From the NCBI RefSeq assembly GCF_000143415.4, contig NW_003314323.1, positions 686,499-750,498 of the forward strand: a stretch of 64,000 nucleotides of DNA, written 5' to 3'. The stretch's first letter is position 1. Every line of letters starts with the position of its first letter. Source of the stretch: Selaginella moellendorffii (taxonomy: Eukaryota > Plantae > Lycopodiophyta). Shown in pieces: positions 22,949 to 60,350 of this stretch. The position numbers and the translations under genes were made by a program. Under the pieces are notes generated by a model. The model was not told the origin of the DNA. It made no database searches and saw only the letters and a program-made list of their open reading frames with translations.

Positions 22949-24630
22949 AAAAGGACACAGGCTTACAAACTGGAAGATTTCGAAAGCTACGAATGTTACA
23001 ATCCTGGCTGCGAGAACGAGTAGTCAGTATTTACAATGTGCTTCAACCATATTCGCTTTGTTAGACCGATCTCTGACATTCAATAAGCCCGCGAGTTCAC
23101 TCCGTGGTGGATTAAAGATGGAGAAACCTCTCCCGCGGCATTGCGATTCTAAATTGTTTGCCGGGGGCCGGCCTCAATCGGCCAAGGAAGAAAAAATGAG
23201 TTTGTGTTCGAGATTTTCTTGCTCGCTCGCTCACTCGCTGCCTACGAATGAAGCAGGAAGGAGAACAACTGGTGGCTCGGGGAGAAATGCACGATACAGC
23301 ACCCCCTCTCTCCCCCTTTTTCCGAGCAGAAAAATGATAAGTTCACTCAAAAAACTGAAAATTGCGCCACCATCTTAGCACAAATGTTTGGAGACCTACA
23401 AATTTTCATCCAGCGAATCAAGTCTCCGAAGCCACATCTTCCACAAAAATGGCGGAGGTGCTCGAGCACAAAGCATTCCACTGGATCTTCGGACTTCAAG
23501 AATTTTAGTGTTTTTAGTGTAAATCAATGCCGTCGTCATAAAAAAATCCATAAGTCTTTAGGAAAAAAAAAAACTAAAGAAACAAGGAAAGAACACGTAC
23601 CTAAATAAATAGAAAGGGTCTGTCGTTAAAAAGAATGTTGGCAAAACTAAGAAAACATACCGGTGGTAACTCTGGAGGAGAAGTGACACCATCAGGCCTG
23701 TGTTGCTCCACGTACTTGCCAAAGTGAAGCAGAGACGCTTTGCTCGTTCTCGGTAGCCATGCCGCATGGGCGTTCTTCTCCTCGATCAGCTTGGACAACA
23801 TAGCCTTTGCGTTTAGGAGGCGTGTTGTTGCATCATTCCAAGCACAACCACAAACATTACAGAACGTCACCCATTCTCGTAACGCTAGCCCTAGTTCCGC
23901 ACAAGCATGCCGCGAACATCTGGAAGTTGGCCCAAGCTGACAATCCGAGGCCCACGACCCTTGCGGTATTGTCGCAGAGAAGGATCTGGTGCGAGCATCT
24001 AGATCGCTCTCATGCGAGTCGCGGTAGATTTCAGCGACCATCCTGATGCAGTCATAGACAAGGAACAGTTACGCTTCATCTTCATTTCGGAGTGCAGCGC
24101 ATCAACCCAAGCTCTCGAAGTGGTACTGCAGCACATCACACCAGGTACCTGCCGACGAGTACCCCACACGCCACCTTTTTCTTCGCATCCAAGAAGAGTT
24201 CCTTGCCCGTATTGAAGCTCCGCCACAGACAGCATAACCCAGTTGACCTAAAATTTGAAGGATAATGCAGCTTTAACTCATACTGACGTGGCAGTTTAGC
24301 TAGCCGAAGAGCAACGTCCTTTCAAATCACTAGGGCTTTTGGCGATCGCGGTGGAGGCGCTGCGACGATGGGCGGACACGAATCAATCCGCGAGCTCCAT
24401 CTCTTTTCGCGCTGAGCTCCACAGCCTGCAGAGCTTTCTCTAAAGGTACGCCGATCAAACTTTCGGTTCGCCATCGATTCGATTCCATCGCTCACAAGCA
24501 CAATGCGCGCAGGGGAATTTCGTTTTCTCTCGTCGTCAAGAGCTCGAGAGAAGATCGTCTTTGCTAGTTCTCGGGGGCTTCTTTTTTCTTTTTCCGTTCG
24601 TTTATCCTGCCAAGTTAGCTGGTTTTCACC

Positions 24631-26723: not shown

Positions 26724-27996
26724 TTACAAAAAGTTGTTTGTGAAGAGGTCACTGGCATTTACGCGGATTTGTTCTTCGCTGCTTCCATCTGATGTTAACA
26801 GATCACGGAGAGAGACGCTTACGCCCGGATTTGGATTTCGCGACTGGATTCTTGTGGTGAGCATTTTGTTGGCGGAGAGCCAGTCCAAGAATTTGGACCA
26901 CTTGCCGCTCGCCATGGTCCCCCATTCGCCCGATGGATTGGCGAGAAAAGTCTTTGATAGAAACTCGAGGGACTCCATCACCATGTCCAAATCATCGAGG
27001 TGCTCGGGAGCTTGTGCCTGTCGCAGCGCGTTAAGAACCGTTTTTTGCTTACAACTTCAAGCTTACCAGAAGAGTTTTTGCCGAGGACTCGATGTTTGCT
27101 GTGCTGTAAGCGAATCCTTTTGCCGAAGCTCGTAAGAATCCCCTCACAACGTCTGGTTTCTCCCTGTTGGAAACATTAGGAAGAAAACGCAACGAGACGA
27201 AAGAGCTTACTCGAGAGTGTCCGGGTGAGCTATGACGACTGGAGAATAGCAGTAAGGAATCCTGATACATTGGATGGTGCTAATCAGTTGCAGGGTACTT
27301 CACAAAAGCCACAAACATACCCGTATTCCTCGAGGATAAACTCGTTTAGTTCGATGCCTTTGCGCTTCGCCAGCACACCCTCCCAAGCTCGAAAAATCCA
27401 AGTTGCGTCTGCCTTGTTTTGTAATAGAGTGTTCCAGATTCCCAACTTGTCGGGAGTAGCCTCCTCAAAATTCCCGGCACCACCATCGGCTTGGATAAGT
27501 TTCTGGACAATTCTGCCTTCAAATCTTGCTGCGTAGGACGCATAAACCTTTCCATCCAAATCTCTAGGCCGACACAATCCACTCTGTTTAAGAGTAGCTG
27601 CACAAACAGGGAAAGATTACAAACAAGATTTCGAAAAATCCAAGTACCAATTGCGCTGAGATCATCTTGAAGAACTGCCGCTACAGCGACGAGTTTGGAC
27701 CTCGCTGGAGGTAAATGATAGCTTATTACAGTCTCGCTAGGTGCAAGCCCGAATGCTGCATAAACACTTCTTAGTTTCTGAAAGCACGAACCAGACCACT
27801 TACTTGCTTTTCGTGCAGAAACCTGAGAAGCTGGGGTCAGTTCGTAGTTGGAAACATGGGGACTTAGAAACTCCACGCAGATGCCTTCCTCCTTGTAGTA
27901 GCCCAACGCCTGTGCCACATAAAAGCCCACATGATTTGTGTTGGCCGTCCAGTCCAGCGCCAAAGAAACGCTTTGCAAGGTTCCTTCGGTGGCCAT
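26724..27996 (-). CDS. NMT1/THI5-like (ThiY/SsuA-type periplasmic-binding fold) protein, multi-exon
   Basis: VSLALDWTANTNHVGFYVAQALGYYKEEGICVEF, KLVAVAAVLQDDLSAI, RPRDLDGKVYASY, ADATWIFRAWEGV, EEYGIPYCYSPVVIAHPD, PDVVRGFLRASAKGFAY, WGTMASGKWSKFLDWL. GT-AG introns. Confidence 0.88.
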
Positions 27997-28071
27997 GGCT
28001 GGGAATTGCAAGAAGTAAAACTTCTTTTCAAGTAATAAGCTGATAAGTTAACAACGTTTCATTCATACCTG

Positions 28072-29772
28072 TCAATGGACGCTGTTGACAGCAAGAGTAT
28101 GAGAACAATATGGACAAGTTCCATGAAGTACATTGAAGGACCTGACACCGCGCCGTTCGTCAAGAAACCGTAAGAGAACGCAATGCTTACTGTATAGTTG
28201 TGGGCAACAACCAATCAGCTAGACATATTGTGTGGAACGCTTGGCCACAGCTTGGATTGTTACAAACATGATCCGGTATGCCGTCCTCTGTGTAACATAA
28301 CAATGCAGTAAAACAGCAGTTACCAACACGAGATTTTACCGTCTGGTAGTTTGTATGCGTAACATATTCCACATTCCGTTGACAGTCCTCCCAGTTGATG
28401 GGTTTCAGGAGGAGGAGGAATGGGAACTTGAAGAACGGTTTCTAGATTGTCAAGCAAGTTCTTGTCTTCTGTCCTGCAGGAAAAATATCATTTTTGTTAG
28501 AAGGATCGTAAGAAAGAAAATGTTTCAGAACCATATCATGCTACTCCCAATCAATCTTTGCCTCAGGGGCGAGACGACAGTTCCAGGGCCGAAAAAGCTG
28601 CACCTAGCAAAAGCAATTCTAAGCGTCATGTAAAAACTATCCTACCTTACTCTGGTAAAGAACGCGGAGTTGCTGGATTGATCTTGATTGATACTGAGCA
28701 GTGACCGCCTGTGAAAAAGAGAGTGTGAAATTTGAACACGTAAAAAAAAGACAAACCCAAATAAATTCGTCTGGAGATGTCAGCTCGAGAGAGCTGAACA
28801 GGTTCATGTACCCAAGCTCTTTTGTCAATGTCGTCCATCACGTTCCAAAAATCTTGATAGCTATCCACGGCCTGCATTTACATTGTTTAAAGATTAAAAG
28901 TTCCAAAAGGAAAAAAGAAGAAAGAAGTTACCAACTGGAACTGTGATAGAGCATCTCTCAAACTAGCACGGGAGGTCCATTCCACAGACCACGAAGATGG
29001 AAGGTCCTACAAAACGTTCCGGTAAAAACTAGTTGGCAGGATGGGTGCTTACAGCAGTAATACTGGGCTGCGACAATGGAAAATCTGGAGAGAAACTTAA
29101 ACGTAGAGTGTGCACTCGATCTGCGCTGTCGCTGAAAGAGAGTACTTGATTAAGAAACGTAGAAGACAATTATCTTACATCACGCGAAGCCAGAGCTTAG
29201 AGAAGTCGTCACTAATGTAAGCAATGTTCTCCCATCCCATCTCATCGATCTGAACAAAATGAATCTAAAGTGTTTGGAAAGATAGAAGAAGAAGATGCTT
29301 ACTTGAGTGTAGAGCTGCGAGGGCGATAACACTGGCTTGGATTGAGCATGCAAAATACATTCCTACAACCACAGTAAGTAAAGCCTTCGCTCGAGAAATC
29401 GAAGTAGAAAGCTTTACCATAACGTTTTTAACTTCCACACAAAACGCATCGATGTTCTTACTCTTCTGGAGCCTCTGCAAAAAAACTTTAGCATTGAAGA
29501 AAAAAGAGAGAAAATTCTTGCCACTCACATCCCAAAGAACTTCCTCAAAGCCTCGAAACATTGCGCGCATCGGGGCGCCACACTCGATCTTTGCGTTGGA
29601 TAAGGGATTAGAGATAGGATCTACATCGTGGAGGGAAAACGAGAATTCTTGGTTCTGTGAAGGAAGAAATCGCCACTAGAAAGAAGAATCCGATTGATAG
29701 GGATACCTGGATTGAGAAGAAGACTTGAAATGCCGTGGCGCTGGTGCCAAGCGGCAGCACAGTGGGCGCCAT
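28072..29772 (-). CDS. FANCL: E3 ubiquitin ligase FANCL, multi-exon
   Basis: N-terminal ELF-like FQVFFSIQ|NQEFSFSL..NAKIEC; DRWD region YQDFWNVMDDIDKRAWVHEP..DISRRIYLG..SIKINPATPRSLPE; RING VECGICYAYKL..IPDHVCNNPSCGQAFHTICLADWL..SFNVLHGTCPYCSHTL. Confidence 0.92.
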
Positions 29773-29836
29773 TCTCCTCAAGAGCCCTAAGAATATGAAA
29801 TTTTGGCGCCAATTTTCTAGGGCTCTAGTGGGATCG

Positions 29837-32182
<2,346 letters not shown>

Positions 32183-32347
32183 AAGAAAAGGTATTTACTT
32201 GATGTCAATAAATCAAGTAAGAAACCACAAGGGTAAAAAAGTGCGCTTTGTTTCAAAACATCTCCCGCGTCTTTTTGCCCTAAGATTATTCTCTTCGTTT
32301 CGTGGGCGATGAGCTAGGGCGCGATGAGCAGCGTCGTCTAGGGCCCG

Positions 32348-34156
32348 ATGAGCAGCATCGTCTGTCCGGTGTGTTATGAGGATGCCAAGCCTGGAAGCGA
32401 GGATCTCCAAGCTATTGCTGGATGCGGACATGTGTTTCACGAGCTTTGGTATGTGATTCATTTCGCGCGATCAATCTATTCATTCCTTTCTTCTGATCCT
32501 CATTCTCTTCTCGTCAAGTCTCCAGCAATGGCTCGAGTATTGCCACAGGAAACCGTGCTGCCCGGTGTGTAAAGAATCTTGCCCAGCGAAACAGATCCAT
32601 CGGCTATACTTTTTATCATCCGACCAACAAACCCAATCAGTTTCTCACTCGCAAAACAGCAGCGCAACCATTGACGCAGTAAGATCTCCACATTTTATTC
32701 TCCATGGTTTTGCTCGAATTCTTTACTTTCTTCTTTTCCTTGTAGGTGCTTGGGAAGCTGGAGTCTCAGCTCTCGGTAGCTAATGCAGCACTACAAGCGA
32801 TCAAGCAAGAAAACAAGCATCTCGATGACGAGGTGGATTTTCCTTTTATCAAAAAGTGTTTTTTTACTGATAAATCTGTGTCACAGCTCGCCAATCTTAA
32901 GATCAAGCTTGAGAAATCAGAGTGTGTTCGACGGAAAGCTATGAGTGACCTTGACATCTGCAGAGAATCCTCGTCAAGGCTCCAGGAGGTATATTCAAAC
33001 TTTTTTAGACGTTCAGCATGAGCCTGTGTGTTCTTCCTGTAGGAAGTGAATAGGAGTTTAGAGGACCGCACGAAGCTGATTGAGAAGAACACATCGTTAG
33101 CAAAAGAGCTTGCTTCCATGAAGATGTAAGTAGTGCCTTGTATTTGCAGTGTTTTAAACCGTCATTGTCACAGGGTAGCAGACATTTCCTTGGACGAGGA
33201 TGAAATCTTGCGGCTTGCAAATGTAGGCCAAGCAAAGAACAAGGATAATATTATTGACACGCTCACAAGATCCCTTGTCATTCGTAACAAGTATGTTTCT
33301 ATGTTCTTCTTGACGCGACCAATCCTTCCAAGCCGTCTGTATTCAGGAGTTACAGAGACTTGGTGAACAAGTGCAGCTCTTTGGGAATGAACGAGACAGT
33401 TGCTATTCAAAAAGCTAACAAAGCATCTGAGCAACTCAGAATTCTAAAGGTATGCACAGCTTTGATCCATGTTTTTTCTCTACTTATCGAATCCAGGCTC
33501 GCGTCCAAGAGCTAGAAAAAGCTCTAGAGGTTAAAGAAAACAAGGAGCTTCGAGACCTGAAGAGGAAGATCGAACAAAGTAATACGAACTTTGTAGCTGA
33601 AAAAAAGATGGCTTCCACAACTGCGGAACATGAGGACAAAGTCAGGCATGAAACCGCTACTGAGGATGGCTGCTTTGTGCCTAAGCCTACAAATCTCTGC
33701 TCTGATAAAGCTCTACAAATCTCCATAAGGCGCGACGCTCCAATATGTAGCCCGATTCTTCCAGGTAAATCACTGAAACGTCTCACTTCCTCACCAGCAG
33801 CACCATGAGTCGCAGGCGACTTGGCGAAAAACCAAGAGCAAGTCTGTGCGCAAGACTCGTCGACCAGAAAGAGAGTGTACGCCGCAACGAGCGGGACGAG
33901 CTCTCCTCGAGGATTTACACCGTCCAGCAGTGACAAGGGAAGCTTCATACTCCGCGGTGCAGATGGCCGTGGTGGAAGAGTGACGATCTTGAAGCCTCCG
34001 GTAAGTCCGATCACTTTAGTCTCAGTGTCTAAGTCCATATATGTTTCCAAATTCCAGGGAATCAAAGCAAGCGCGCATAAACAATCCAAGCGTGCCAAGA
34101 ATCACCGCAGCAACGAAGGATTGCACATAGAACACTTCTTCGGGCGAGCAGAATAG
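32348..34156 (+). CDS. TRAIP: TRAIP-like RING E3 ubiquitin ligase (RING + coiled coil), multi-exon
   Basis: CPVCYED..DLQAIAGCGHVFHELCLQQWLEYC..CPVCK..IHRLYF; long coiled coil; IDTLTRSLVIRNK; GADGRGGRVTILK; C-terminal PIP-like LHIEHFF. Confidence 0.8.
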
Positions 34157-34232
34157 AGTATGGTTGCATTACATAGTATATATTTTGCGGTATATTGCAT
34201 TTTGCAGCAATGTATAATACCATAGTTCTCCG

Positions 34233-34929
34233 TCACGGAGCTTCCAGGAGCATCTTGCCAGTGTCAAACTCCAGAAGCGGCTGCTGCTCCAGCCAAGACT
34301 CATCGAACTCGATGTTGTTATCCGGGATCGCGAAGAGCTCCTCCAGAAACGCATCGTCCAGTGTAAACGTTTGCTCGTCACCTTCCAAGCTTCTGGATTG
34401 CGGCTGCTTGGCATCGATATCACTTCCCACAAACTCTCCTTGCACAGCTTGAATTGCATCCTCGAAATCACCATCTGCGGAGCTCAACGAAGGCGAGGAT
34501 ACCAGAGGTGGTGGCGAATCCTTGTTCAAGGTTAACTCCTCTGGCTCTTGAGACTTGGGACGATCCTCCGCCAACTTATGGGTAGTGTCACCTTGTAACG
34601 ATTGGATGAAGGGCTTCATCTGGGGTGGCAGAGTTTCGAAATTGAGGCCGGCGATAGTGTCGAGGGCGTATTTCTTGCCCGTGTCCGGAGAGATAGCCGA
34701 TACGTTGAGTATTGTACGTGTGAGCACATGTAGTTCCCATATTTTCTTTGTGATGCCGAAAATTCTCTTGCGGAAACAACTTTTTCTTGTTTCCGGGTCC
34801 TGGATGTATTTGAGTGGGATTTTCTTCTTTCCGGCTGTTTTTTTCTACAACATAAATCAAAGAAGGAAAATTGAAGAACTATACATGGAACAATCATACA
34901 AATACAAATACCTTGATTGATGGCGACAT
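34233..34929 (-). CDS. Divergent type I (SRF-like) MADS-box transcription factor, 2 exons (34929-34912, 34844-34233), about 209 aa
   Basis: Spliced MSPSIK|KKTAGKKKIPLKYIQDPETRKSCFRKRIFGITKKIWELHVLTRTILNVSAISPDTGKKYAL aligns with the MADS consensus GRxKIxIxxIxNxxxRxxTFxKRxxGLxKKAxELSxLT. It is in frame with the 164-aa ORF; acidic C-terminus; no K-box. Confidence 0.8.
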
Positions 34930-47823: not shown

Positions 47824-48747
47824 CGATAAGCCAAAAACAAAGGAACAAAAGAACCCTATTCCGCCATAGCCACCACGATCACGTAAAAGGTTAAAATTTT
47901 GAAAATTTTGAAAACTTTTACGAATTACGGCGCGCGTGTAATGCCGGTCAAACAGTTTACCGCCCAGCGAATGGGGTGGCGCCAGATGGCGAGATTTGTC
48001 TTCTAACTTAACTAGTAACGGCGAAATTTGCCGCCGTCACAAACAGTCTTTAATGCGCGCCGACGGAATCTGAGTGTGAGGAACAGAATATGCGTAGCAG
48101 TGTGACCGTTAGGGCTTTAATACTTCACCGACGTGGGAAGTGATTCATTACTATGGAACGGAAGAATTCCATCCATCATCAGAAAACTATAGAAGTTCTA
48201 GTAAGAAATTTCATGGAAACCTGTGATTTGCCAACTCAATCGAATCATCGAATCAAAGGAGAAAAGTCTGACCAAAAATCGCGACTTTGGTGAGTTTGTT
48301 TGTATACAATGAAGAGAGAACCGAAAATTCGAACTCCACATCGATCCTGAAAGGCATATCACCAGTTCCAGCCCGCTCTTAAAGGCAACTCCTTTGTACC
48401 TTTCCAAGCCGGTGTTAGCGCATCGCTACGAGTAGCTTTGCAACGATTTCAAAAGCATGAAATGGATGGTCCGCAAAGCAAAAGCCAGCGATTGCGAGTA
48501 GAACACCTGGAAAGATTGTGATCCATAGTTAGTTGATCAACTTCGGCGAGAACTGGAAGAAATTGATCACTTCCAAAAAACTAAGAAAAACTTTCCATTC
48601 ACCTGTGAAAAGCTCTCTGGAAAATTATCCTCAATGCCGTAGCCTCTCAAAGTTCCCTCGATCTCCATGGGTCCAGTTACTTCTACAAAACCATCGCTCG
48701 CGTTAGAATCAAAGCTCTCGAAATGCTTACCGCCATCGTCCTCGGTT

Positions 48748-51126: not shown

Positions 51127-51313
51127 CCCACAGCATTTTGCGATGCCCTAGAAAGAAGTGCTGACTCAGCCCTAGGAAGTGACGCGGCAAAATCAAATTC
51201 ACCGCCAGCTTGGCGCAATTGTGGCCGCTGGTTTGGAGCTCTCCCCGCCGTTGGATATATAGGGCATCGGCATGAAATACTTTTTGTGTGTCGCATCGAG
51301 GAACAGAGCAGCG

Positions 51314-60062: not shown

Positions 60063-60350
60063 CGATTGGGGACAAGCCAGAGCCACTCTTTCCTCATCAC
60101 TTAGATTATCCTTTAACGCTATGGGTTTAAAAAAATCTCGTGAGCCCTAGAAATCTCTCTCTCTCTTTTGCGCGCAATGGCGATGGCGCTCGATCGGGTT
60201 GCGAATTCCTGCTGTTCGCGGCGATTCAATCGTGGAGGAGCGAGCGGGATTGCGATAGTATTGCTCCAGGTTTGCTGATTTCTTGCGCGCCGCAATGCCG
60301 TCGTGAGATGCCGCCGATGTCGCGGCGCGCAAATGTGGAGGGATTTCTAG

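Follow-up and report, generated by a model that had tools for sequence, protein, structure and literature searches.

Three neighbouring genes of Selaginella moellendorffii, FANCL, RECQL1 and a TRAIP-like RING ligase gene: separate transcription and a probable bidirectional E2F promoter

The window analysed here is a stretch of 64,000 nucleotides from the lycophyte Selaginella moellendorffii (RefSeq assembly GCF_000143415.4, contig NW_003314323.1, positions 686,499 to 750,498 of the forward strand), and all coordinates are counted from its first letter. Three genes are contiguous in it over 28072-34156: FANCL, a RecQ helicase gene of the RECQL1 type and a gene for a TRAIP-like RING ligase. An earlier note, made from the letters of this DNA, had described them as an operon-like repair cluster, with chance adjacency in a compact genome as its fallback. 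In order to examine the locus, the region 27500-34800 was read, all of its reading frames were laid out and three gene models were built, in which every intron is of the GT-AG type and 31-71 nt long, introns this short being in keeping with S. moellendorffii. As queries for the database searches we used single exons of the window or database proteins rather than joined full-length Selaginella proteins. The models match the contiguous arrangement that had been described, including the spacers of 64 bp between the FANCL and RecQ start codons and of 165 bp between the RecQ stop codon and the start codon of the RING gene. The features of the locus are the following.

28072-29772, minus strand: FANCL gene; 13 coding exons, 366 codons (gene model, Pfam, PDB, RNA joints).
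29773-29836, no strand: head-to-head spacer, probable shared bidirectional core promoter (sequence, RNA contig ends).
29781-29789, plus strand: left arm of an inverted repeat, AGAGCCCTA, telobox-like; 9-17 bp upstream of the FANCL ATG (sequence).
29802-29809, plus strand: E2F-type site TTTGGCGC (pattern search).
29818-29826, plus strand: right arm of the inverted repeat, TAGGGCTCT, telobox-like; 11-19 bp upstream of the RECQL1 ATG (sequence, pattern search).
29837-32182, plus strand: RECQL1-type RecQ helicase gene; 10 exons, 605 codons (gene model, Pfam, PDB, plant loci, RNA contig).
32183-32347, plus strand: spacer of 165 bp between RECQL1 and the TRAIP-like gene (sequence, RNA contig ends).
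32348-34156, plus strand: plant TRAIP-like RING ligase gene; 10 exons, 434 codons (gene model, Pfam RING, RNA joints, alignments, ESM Atlas).
33923-34000, plus strand: conserved motif SFILRGADGRGGRVTILKPP, family signature GADGRGGR(I/V)K(I/V)L; 81% identity to Sphagnum over 26 residues.
34121-34141, plus strand: PIP-like motif LHIEHFF, four residues ahead of the stop codon (alignment).

The three genes are real, spliced and separately transcribed. The RNA evidence mapped on 28160-34159 consists of two RNA-seq runs of 2026, both stranded, together with two Logan contig sets. Reads run in one orientation over FANCL and in the opposite one over the RecQ and RING genes, with the switch in the bin 29760-29959. 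All 15 listed joints agree with introns of the models; nine belong to the RING gene, and the FANCL joints, at 28472/28531 and 28601/28649, have the sense of the minus strand. The RecQ mRNA is represented by a single contig (29836-32244), a separate contig of the RING gene begins at 32310, and a FANCL contig extends to 29777, where it passes into adapter sequence. The observed 5' ends of FANCL and RecQ (29777 and 29836) are at most 58 bp apart, at a read depth too low to define true start sites. All three genes were found at similar low depth in the two runs. Intron 1 of FANCL (29676-29706) has 31 nt in the model, as against 45-71 nt for the others, and is absent from the 15 listed joints, which leaves the start codon of FANCL a little less secure than other parts of the models. 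Read without this intron, the ATG at 29772 opens a frame of only 54 codons before a stop.

The first gene is certainly FANCL, as had been claimed. Its exon at 28758-28871 matches Pfam FANCL_d3 with 31.2 bits (cut-off 23.7), which places the central UBC-like/DRWD domain, and FANCL_C, the C-terminal PHD-like RING of the FANCL type, is matched by 28193-28285 with 39.7 bits (cut-off 27.3) and by 28075-28140 with 25 bits. The PDB matches of the FANCL_d3 exon (3zqs, 7kzp and 6sri) and of the exon encoding CGICYAY are exclusively FANCL chains, and the signatures CGICYAY and CPYC are both present. The N-terminal exons, where the ELF region is expected, have no Pfam match at an E-value of 0.1, being at 19-49 residues each too short to be judged singly. 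Compared with FANCL of the Fanconi core complex, in which it acts as the E3 ligase, the Selaginella gene has FANCL_d3, FANCL_C and both signatures in common and nothing unusual.

The second gene encodes a helicase core (Pfam DEAD; Helicase_C, 1.8e-9) followed by a zinc-binding module (RecQ_Zn_bind, 3.6e-8, 34.5 bits, cut-off 25), the order that marks the RecQ family. Structural matches do not separate the members of this family: the large exon finds, in this order, bacterial RecQ, BLM, RECQ1, RECQ5 and WRN (best E-value 5e-23; 1e-20 to 1e-23 for RecQ, BLM and RECQ1), and for one exon the scores against bacterial RecQ, BLM and human RECQ1 are roughly the same. The search with exon 8 returned exon-sized fragments, the named ones among them being called 'ATP-dependent DNA helicase Q-like 1' or 'Q1'; their identity was 71% at most, so no other Selaginella is among them. 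Four of these fragments led to plant contigs to which all ten Selaginella exons align in order and with the same boundaries. Exons 1-2 align to exons of two of these loci (L012 and L014) that carry the precomputed domain PF28551 UBA_RECQL1, and through these homologous exons an N-terminal UBA domain may be inferred in the Selaginella protein. The latter has, next to this UBA-like N-terminus, an acidic linker, ends at about the zinc module (36 residues into it) and is devoid of RQC and HRDC domains.

Judged by its sequence, the helicase is most probably of the plant RecQ-like 1 (RECQL1) type. It shares with AtRECQL1 and OsRecQ1 the core and zinc module, the lack of RQC and HRDC, the probable UBA-like N-terminus and ten exons colinear with those of other plant RECQL1 genes. 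The earlier assignment to RECQ1 stands as far as the helicase family and its plant type are concerned; the gene had been taken for the animal fork-restart helicase RECQ1, and the role known from plants is another. OsRecQ1 is required in rice for small RNAs induced by DNA damage (PMC3559376), and crosslink repair in plants proceeds via RECQ4A, HRQ1, RAD5A, MUS81 and FAN1, most genes of the plant FANC pathway being minor in this process (PMC6747210). For plant RECQ1 no role in crosslink repair is documented, the helicases used in it by plants being RECQ4A and HRQ1. Taken together, the small-RNA role of OsRecQ1 and the use of RECQ4A and HRQ1 in crosslink repair make the functional link between this helicase and the Fanconi pathway a weak one in plants.

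FANCL and RECQL1 are divergent, and the proposal that they share a minimal bidirectional promoter is borne out by the 64 bp between their ATGs, by the RNA ends and by an E2F site inside the spacer; divergent starts less than 1 kb apart together with a shared site are the marks of a bidirectional pair. The check for E2F motifs in 29700-29900 that had been advised gave an exact site, TTTGGCGC, which lies in the middle of the spacer and has a nearly palindromic GGCGCC core. The chance of finding such a site in a given 64 bp is about 1 in 100, and the pattern occurs 7 times in the 64 kb window against 11 expected, hence it is not enriched there. Around the site, AGAGCCCTA and TAGGGCTCT form a perfect inverted repeat of 9 bp, the arms of which are located 9-19 bp ahead of their respective ATGs. 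FANCL and RECQL1 diverge from this core promoter of 64 bp, and one E2F dimer on the central site may recruit transcription both ways in proliferating (S-phase) cells. The E2F site and the symmetric promoter probably drive the two genes together in S phase. The arrangement resembles other head-to-head promoters of repair and cell-cycle genes, many of them driven by E2F, in that divergent genome-maintenance genes are separated by a short spacer with a central, near-palindromic E2F site able to serve both. What sets the Selaginella spacer apart is its extreme shortness and near symmetry, with an inverted telobox-like element on either side.

A telobox-like sequence, AGCCCTA, was considered as an element specific to the three genes and was ruled out by its enrichment across the window, where 10 copies are found against 5 expected (twofold; no shuffle reached 10), and by copies near other start codons. 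AGCCCTA or TAGGGCT stands beside E2F-like sequences and start codons at 24331-24412, 48027-48116, 51168-51191, 57150 and 60143; CTAGGGCTTTTGGCGATCGCG is found about 30 bp ahead of the ATG near 24369, and AGCCCTAGAAA...TTTTGCGCGCAATG at 60143 is a further example. It looks like a general telobox-like promoter element, part of a promoter layout common in this genome, and not like a mark of the trio.

No exact TTTSSCGC is present from -600 to +100 of the RECQL1 start at the plant loci L012 and L014-L016; all that occurs there is near matches (GGCGGGAA and TTTCGCGT) in L014-L016. In humans, TRAIP and FANCL are listed as targets of the DREAM/E2F class (PMC5729532). In the crucifer Eruca vesicaria the ATG of the TRAIP-like gene is preceded, at distances of 111 and 73 bp, by two exact E2F sites (L005, 9890-9935), which suggests that members of this family may be under cell-cycle control in flowering plants. 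Given the human listing and the Eruca sites, E2F control appears to belong to each gene and needs no cluster.

The spacer between RECQL1 and the TRAIP-like gene (32183-32347) consists of the 3' untranslated region (UTR) of RECQL1, up to about 32244, and the 5' region of the TRAIP-like gene. Transcription of the latter would start at its own promoter, about 65-100 bp past the end of the RECQL1 mRNA. An exact E2F site is found in intron 1 of the TRAIP-like gene at 32461, and a match of 7 of 8 positions, TCTCCCGC, in its upstream region. Over 32307-32347 there are two to three repeats of the gene's start region (GGGCGATGAGCTAG, then GGGCGCGATGAGCAGCGTCGTCTAG, then GGCCCGATGAGCAGCATCGTC...), which give two tiny upstream open reading frames, one from the ATG at 32309 (2 codons) and one from the ATG at 32324 (MSSVV and a stop), before the real ATG at 32348. 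Since the RNA contig begins at 32310, at least the second of them is on the TRAIP-like mRNA.

In order to find out whether the neighbourhood is conserved, as the earlier note had advised, TRAIP-like loci with 10 kb on each side were compared from the moss Sphagnum jensenii, the liverwort Calypogeia fissa, the lycophyte Diphasiastrum complanatum, from Chara braunii, the crucifer Eruca vesicaria and a moss-like metagenome scaffold of 109 kb. Tblastn searches for which all FANCL and RecQ exons of the window served as queries gave no match at these six loci; the neighbours called there include genes for Alfin/PHD and F-box proteins, a nucleotide-diphospho-sugar transferase and ribosomal protein L5, among others. 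RECQL1 loci were compared with flanks of 5-8 kb in L012 and L014-L017, the latter near-identical to one another, so that two independent loci are represented. No FANCL or TRAIP exon was matched in these flanks, which hold DUF3511, VARLMGL/DUF4378 and Kelch genes, and the FANCL/RECQL1 pairing is accordingly not found at any of them. The adjacency is therefore absent from all six TRAIP-like loci and from both independent RECQL1 loci, and our literature searches found no description of a FANCL/RECQL1/TRAIP neighbourhood. In Selaginella itself, the coding sequences (CDS) that flank the trio are as close as its members are to each other: the start of one (27996) and the stop of a convergent one (34233) are each 76 bp away from the stop codons of FANCL and of the TRAIP-like gene, respectively, and gaps from CDS to CDS across the whole stretch are 64-165 bp. 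With unrelated genes equally close, the spacing of the trio is ordinary for this region.

The third gene has the layout of TRAIP, with an N-terminal RING, a middle part rich in K, E and L and conserved C-terminal motifs. The second half of the RING is encoded by exon 2 and is conserved within the family. An exhaustive search with exon 2 returned 39 proteins, all of those whose source was looked up being from streptophytes; the Selaginella protein itself was not among the matches. Follow-up searches with the Taxus and Diphasiastrum proteins gave only other plants in the best 120, neither Selaginella nor animals. Full-length proteins of the family (about 500-660 residues) are colinear with exons 1, 2 and 5-10 of the window gene, and exon boundaries are common to Selaginella, Sphagnum, Diphasiastrum and Eruca. 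Most plant members have 510-660 residues, compared with 434 in Selaginella. As to gene structure, the TRAIP-like genes of Selaginella, Sphagnum, Diphasiastrum and Eruca are multi-exon, with that of Diphasiastrum spanning 68 kb, and the gene of Calypogeia fissa (L002, 10001-11710) is intronless and translates directly to a protein of 569 residues.

Two motifs stand out at the C-terminus of the family. GADGRGGR(I/V)K(I/V)L, with the Selaginella form GADGRGGRVTIL, is present from ferns and mosses to angiosperms; human TRAIP has a DGLGGR stretch before its PCNA-interacting peptide (PIP) box. The second motif, (L/F)Q(I/M)EHFF, lies three to six residues from the end of the proteins and has the form LHIEHFF in Selaginella, where a PIP-like C-terminus had been pointed out before; the motif is conserved across the family. 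An alignment of 12 sequences, ranging from Chara to angiosperms, shows no variation at E, H and the second F and hardly any at the first F. LHIEHFF agrees with a PIP box at the hydrophobic and aromatic positions but has no glutamine at position 1. In human TRAIP, a PIP box within the last ten residues mediates PCNA binding, and the 447-469 peptide has been crystallised with PCNA (PMC4700480). By analogy, the motif of the plant proteins probably docks on PCNA.

Animal TRAIP is a RING ligase that attaches ubiquitin to CMG where forks have stalled or converged (PMC4700480, PMC6773462). Like it, the plant proteins have an N-terminal RING, a long helical middle and a hydrophobic/aromatic motif a few residues from the C-terminus; they differ from it in that their motif (L/F)Q(I/M)EHFF is devoid of the PIP glutamine at position 1. 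Members of the family are named 'E3 ubiquitin-protein ligase TRAIP', 'TRAIP-like' or 'TRAF-interacting protein', and many 'uncharacterized', by the pipelines of NCBI, UniRef and JGI. In the ESM Atlas, the nearest clusters to the whole protein beyond the plant family are chordate and arthropod TRAIP (0.94-0.96, with 198-207 shared features). It is on this layout, on the source names and on the Atlas neighbours, and not on alignment with animal TRAIP, that the earlier identification of the gene as TRAIP now stands, and we regard a relationship of the two as very probable on these grounds. The gene would then be the Selaginella member of a single, streptophyte-wide family that is the counterpart of animal TRAIP. 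The alternative, that it encodes an unrelated plant RING/coiled-coil ligase of similar layout, would reduce the trio to a pair. It draws on Pfam, which finds only generic RING families, in exon 1 (best zf-RING_11, 2.9e-5, 24.1 bits, under the cut-off of 27 bits), and on PDB, where RING exons 1 and 2 match generic RING proteins only, no TRAIP chain being available for comparison, and a profile of the C-terminal motif gives no match. The missing glutamine and the placement without alignment or tree against an animal sequence count in the same direction, and the Atlas values obtained without the RING (0.82-0.84) are a lead only. However, even without the RING the animal TRAIP clusters remain on top, all nearest non-plant clusters of the whole protein are animal TRAIP, three pipelines arrived independently at TRAIP names, and the layout is that of human TRAIP down to an aromatic, PIP-like motif no more than six residues from the C-terminus (PMC4700480). 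We therefore consider an unrelated ligase very improbable.

With the identity of the genes in place, the question is whether their neighbourhood has a function. We found neither co-transcription of the three genes nor adjacency across the lineages compared, and the operon-like functional cluster is not supported: the RNA contigs are separate, the adjacency is not shared, the unrelated flanks are equally tight and plant RECQ1 is without a documented role in crosslink repair. Given the lack of conservation, the ordinary spacing and the size of the scan, the best fit is the fallback of the earlier note, a chance adjacency within a compact genome. We consider it likely that these are three independent, separately transcribed genes that have become neighbours in this lineage within a gene-dense region, and that they form no conserved or operon-like repair module. 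Several points weigh against this reading. By our own estimate, with about 22,000 genes of which 150-300 act in repair or replication stress, 0.007-0.06 runs of three are expected per genome, which is rare within a single one; with the E2F site and the symmetric promoter, two or more of the three genes would be genuinely co-regulated; the comparison comprised no other Selaginella species and no Isoetes; and the FANCL-RECQL1 pair was compared from the side of RECQL1, in two plants and with short flanks.

These points lead to the possibility of a co-regulated module specific to Selaginella, in which selection keeps the trio together in an E2F-controlled chromatin neighbourhood so that its products would be made in fixed proportions at S phase or under replication stress. 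Besides the low chance expectation within one genome, such a module could account for the exact E2F site in the FANCL/RECQL1 spacer, for the exact site in intron 1 of the TRAIP-like gene with the 7-of-8 match TCTCCCGC upstream, and for the similar low RNA depth of the three genes in both runs. Against it, the arrangement is absent from every other lineage examined and unrelated flanking genes are just as close. A triple of this kind is to be expected somewhere by chance, not being rare over about 250,000 scanned windows in which any shared theme would be flagged. The biology of the plant genes does not favour a common task either, since RECQ1 in rice has been linked to small RNAs induced by damage (PMC3559376) and crosslink repair uses RECQ4A and HRQ1, with most FANC genes minor (PMC6747210). 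A module of this kind is in our view unlikely. Its more specific form, in which a lineage-specific E2F replication-stress module is maintained by selection and its TRAIP-like protein, with GADGRGGR and (L/F)Q(I/M)EHFF, is the plant counterpart of the CMG-unloading ligase, we hold to be distinctly unlikely.

As a cluster the locus has little weight, a compact genome being able to juxtapose related genes by chance. What is new is one more pair of genome-maintenance genes with a bidirectional E2F promoter and, next to it, a gene from an unstudied family of plant TRAIP-like proteins. The nearly symmetric 64 bp spacer with its E2F and telobox-like elements represents a natural minimal bidirectional plant promoter. 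The TRAIP-like ligase is found from Chara to flowering plants with two sharply conserved motifs at its C-terminus, and our literature searches gave no study of a plant TRAIP; in plants, the family is an obvious candidate for unloading of the replisome or for ubiquitylation linked to PCNA.

Both genes that flank the trio are on the minus strand. The one next to FANCL (27346-28011) begins with MATEGTLQSVSLALDW..., and an exact E2F site (27957-27964) falls within its first codons. The convergent gene beyond the TRAIP-like gene (34233-34727) has an acidic C-terminal exon, and with 76 bp between the convergent stop codons the 3' UTRs must be tiny or overlapping. Within 28160-34159 the RNA reads show a second base in roughly half of the reads at many positions, as well as an insertion of 6 bases at 28207 and deletions of 3 and 6 bases at 32120 and 32628, which fits joint expression of two haplotypes of this genome.

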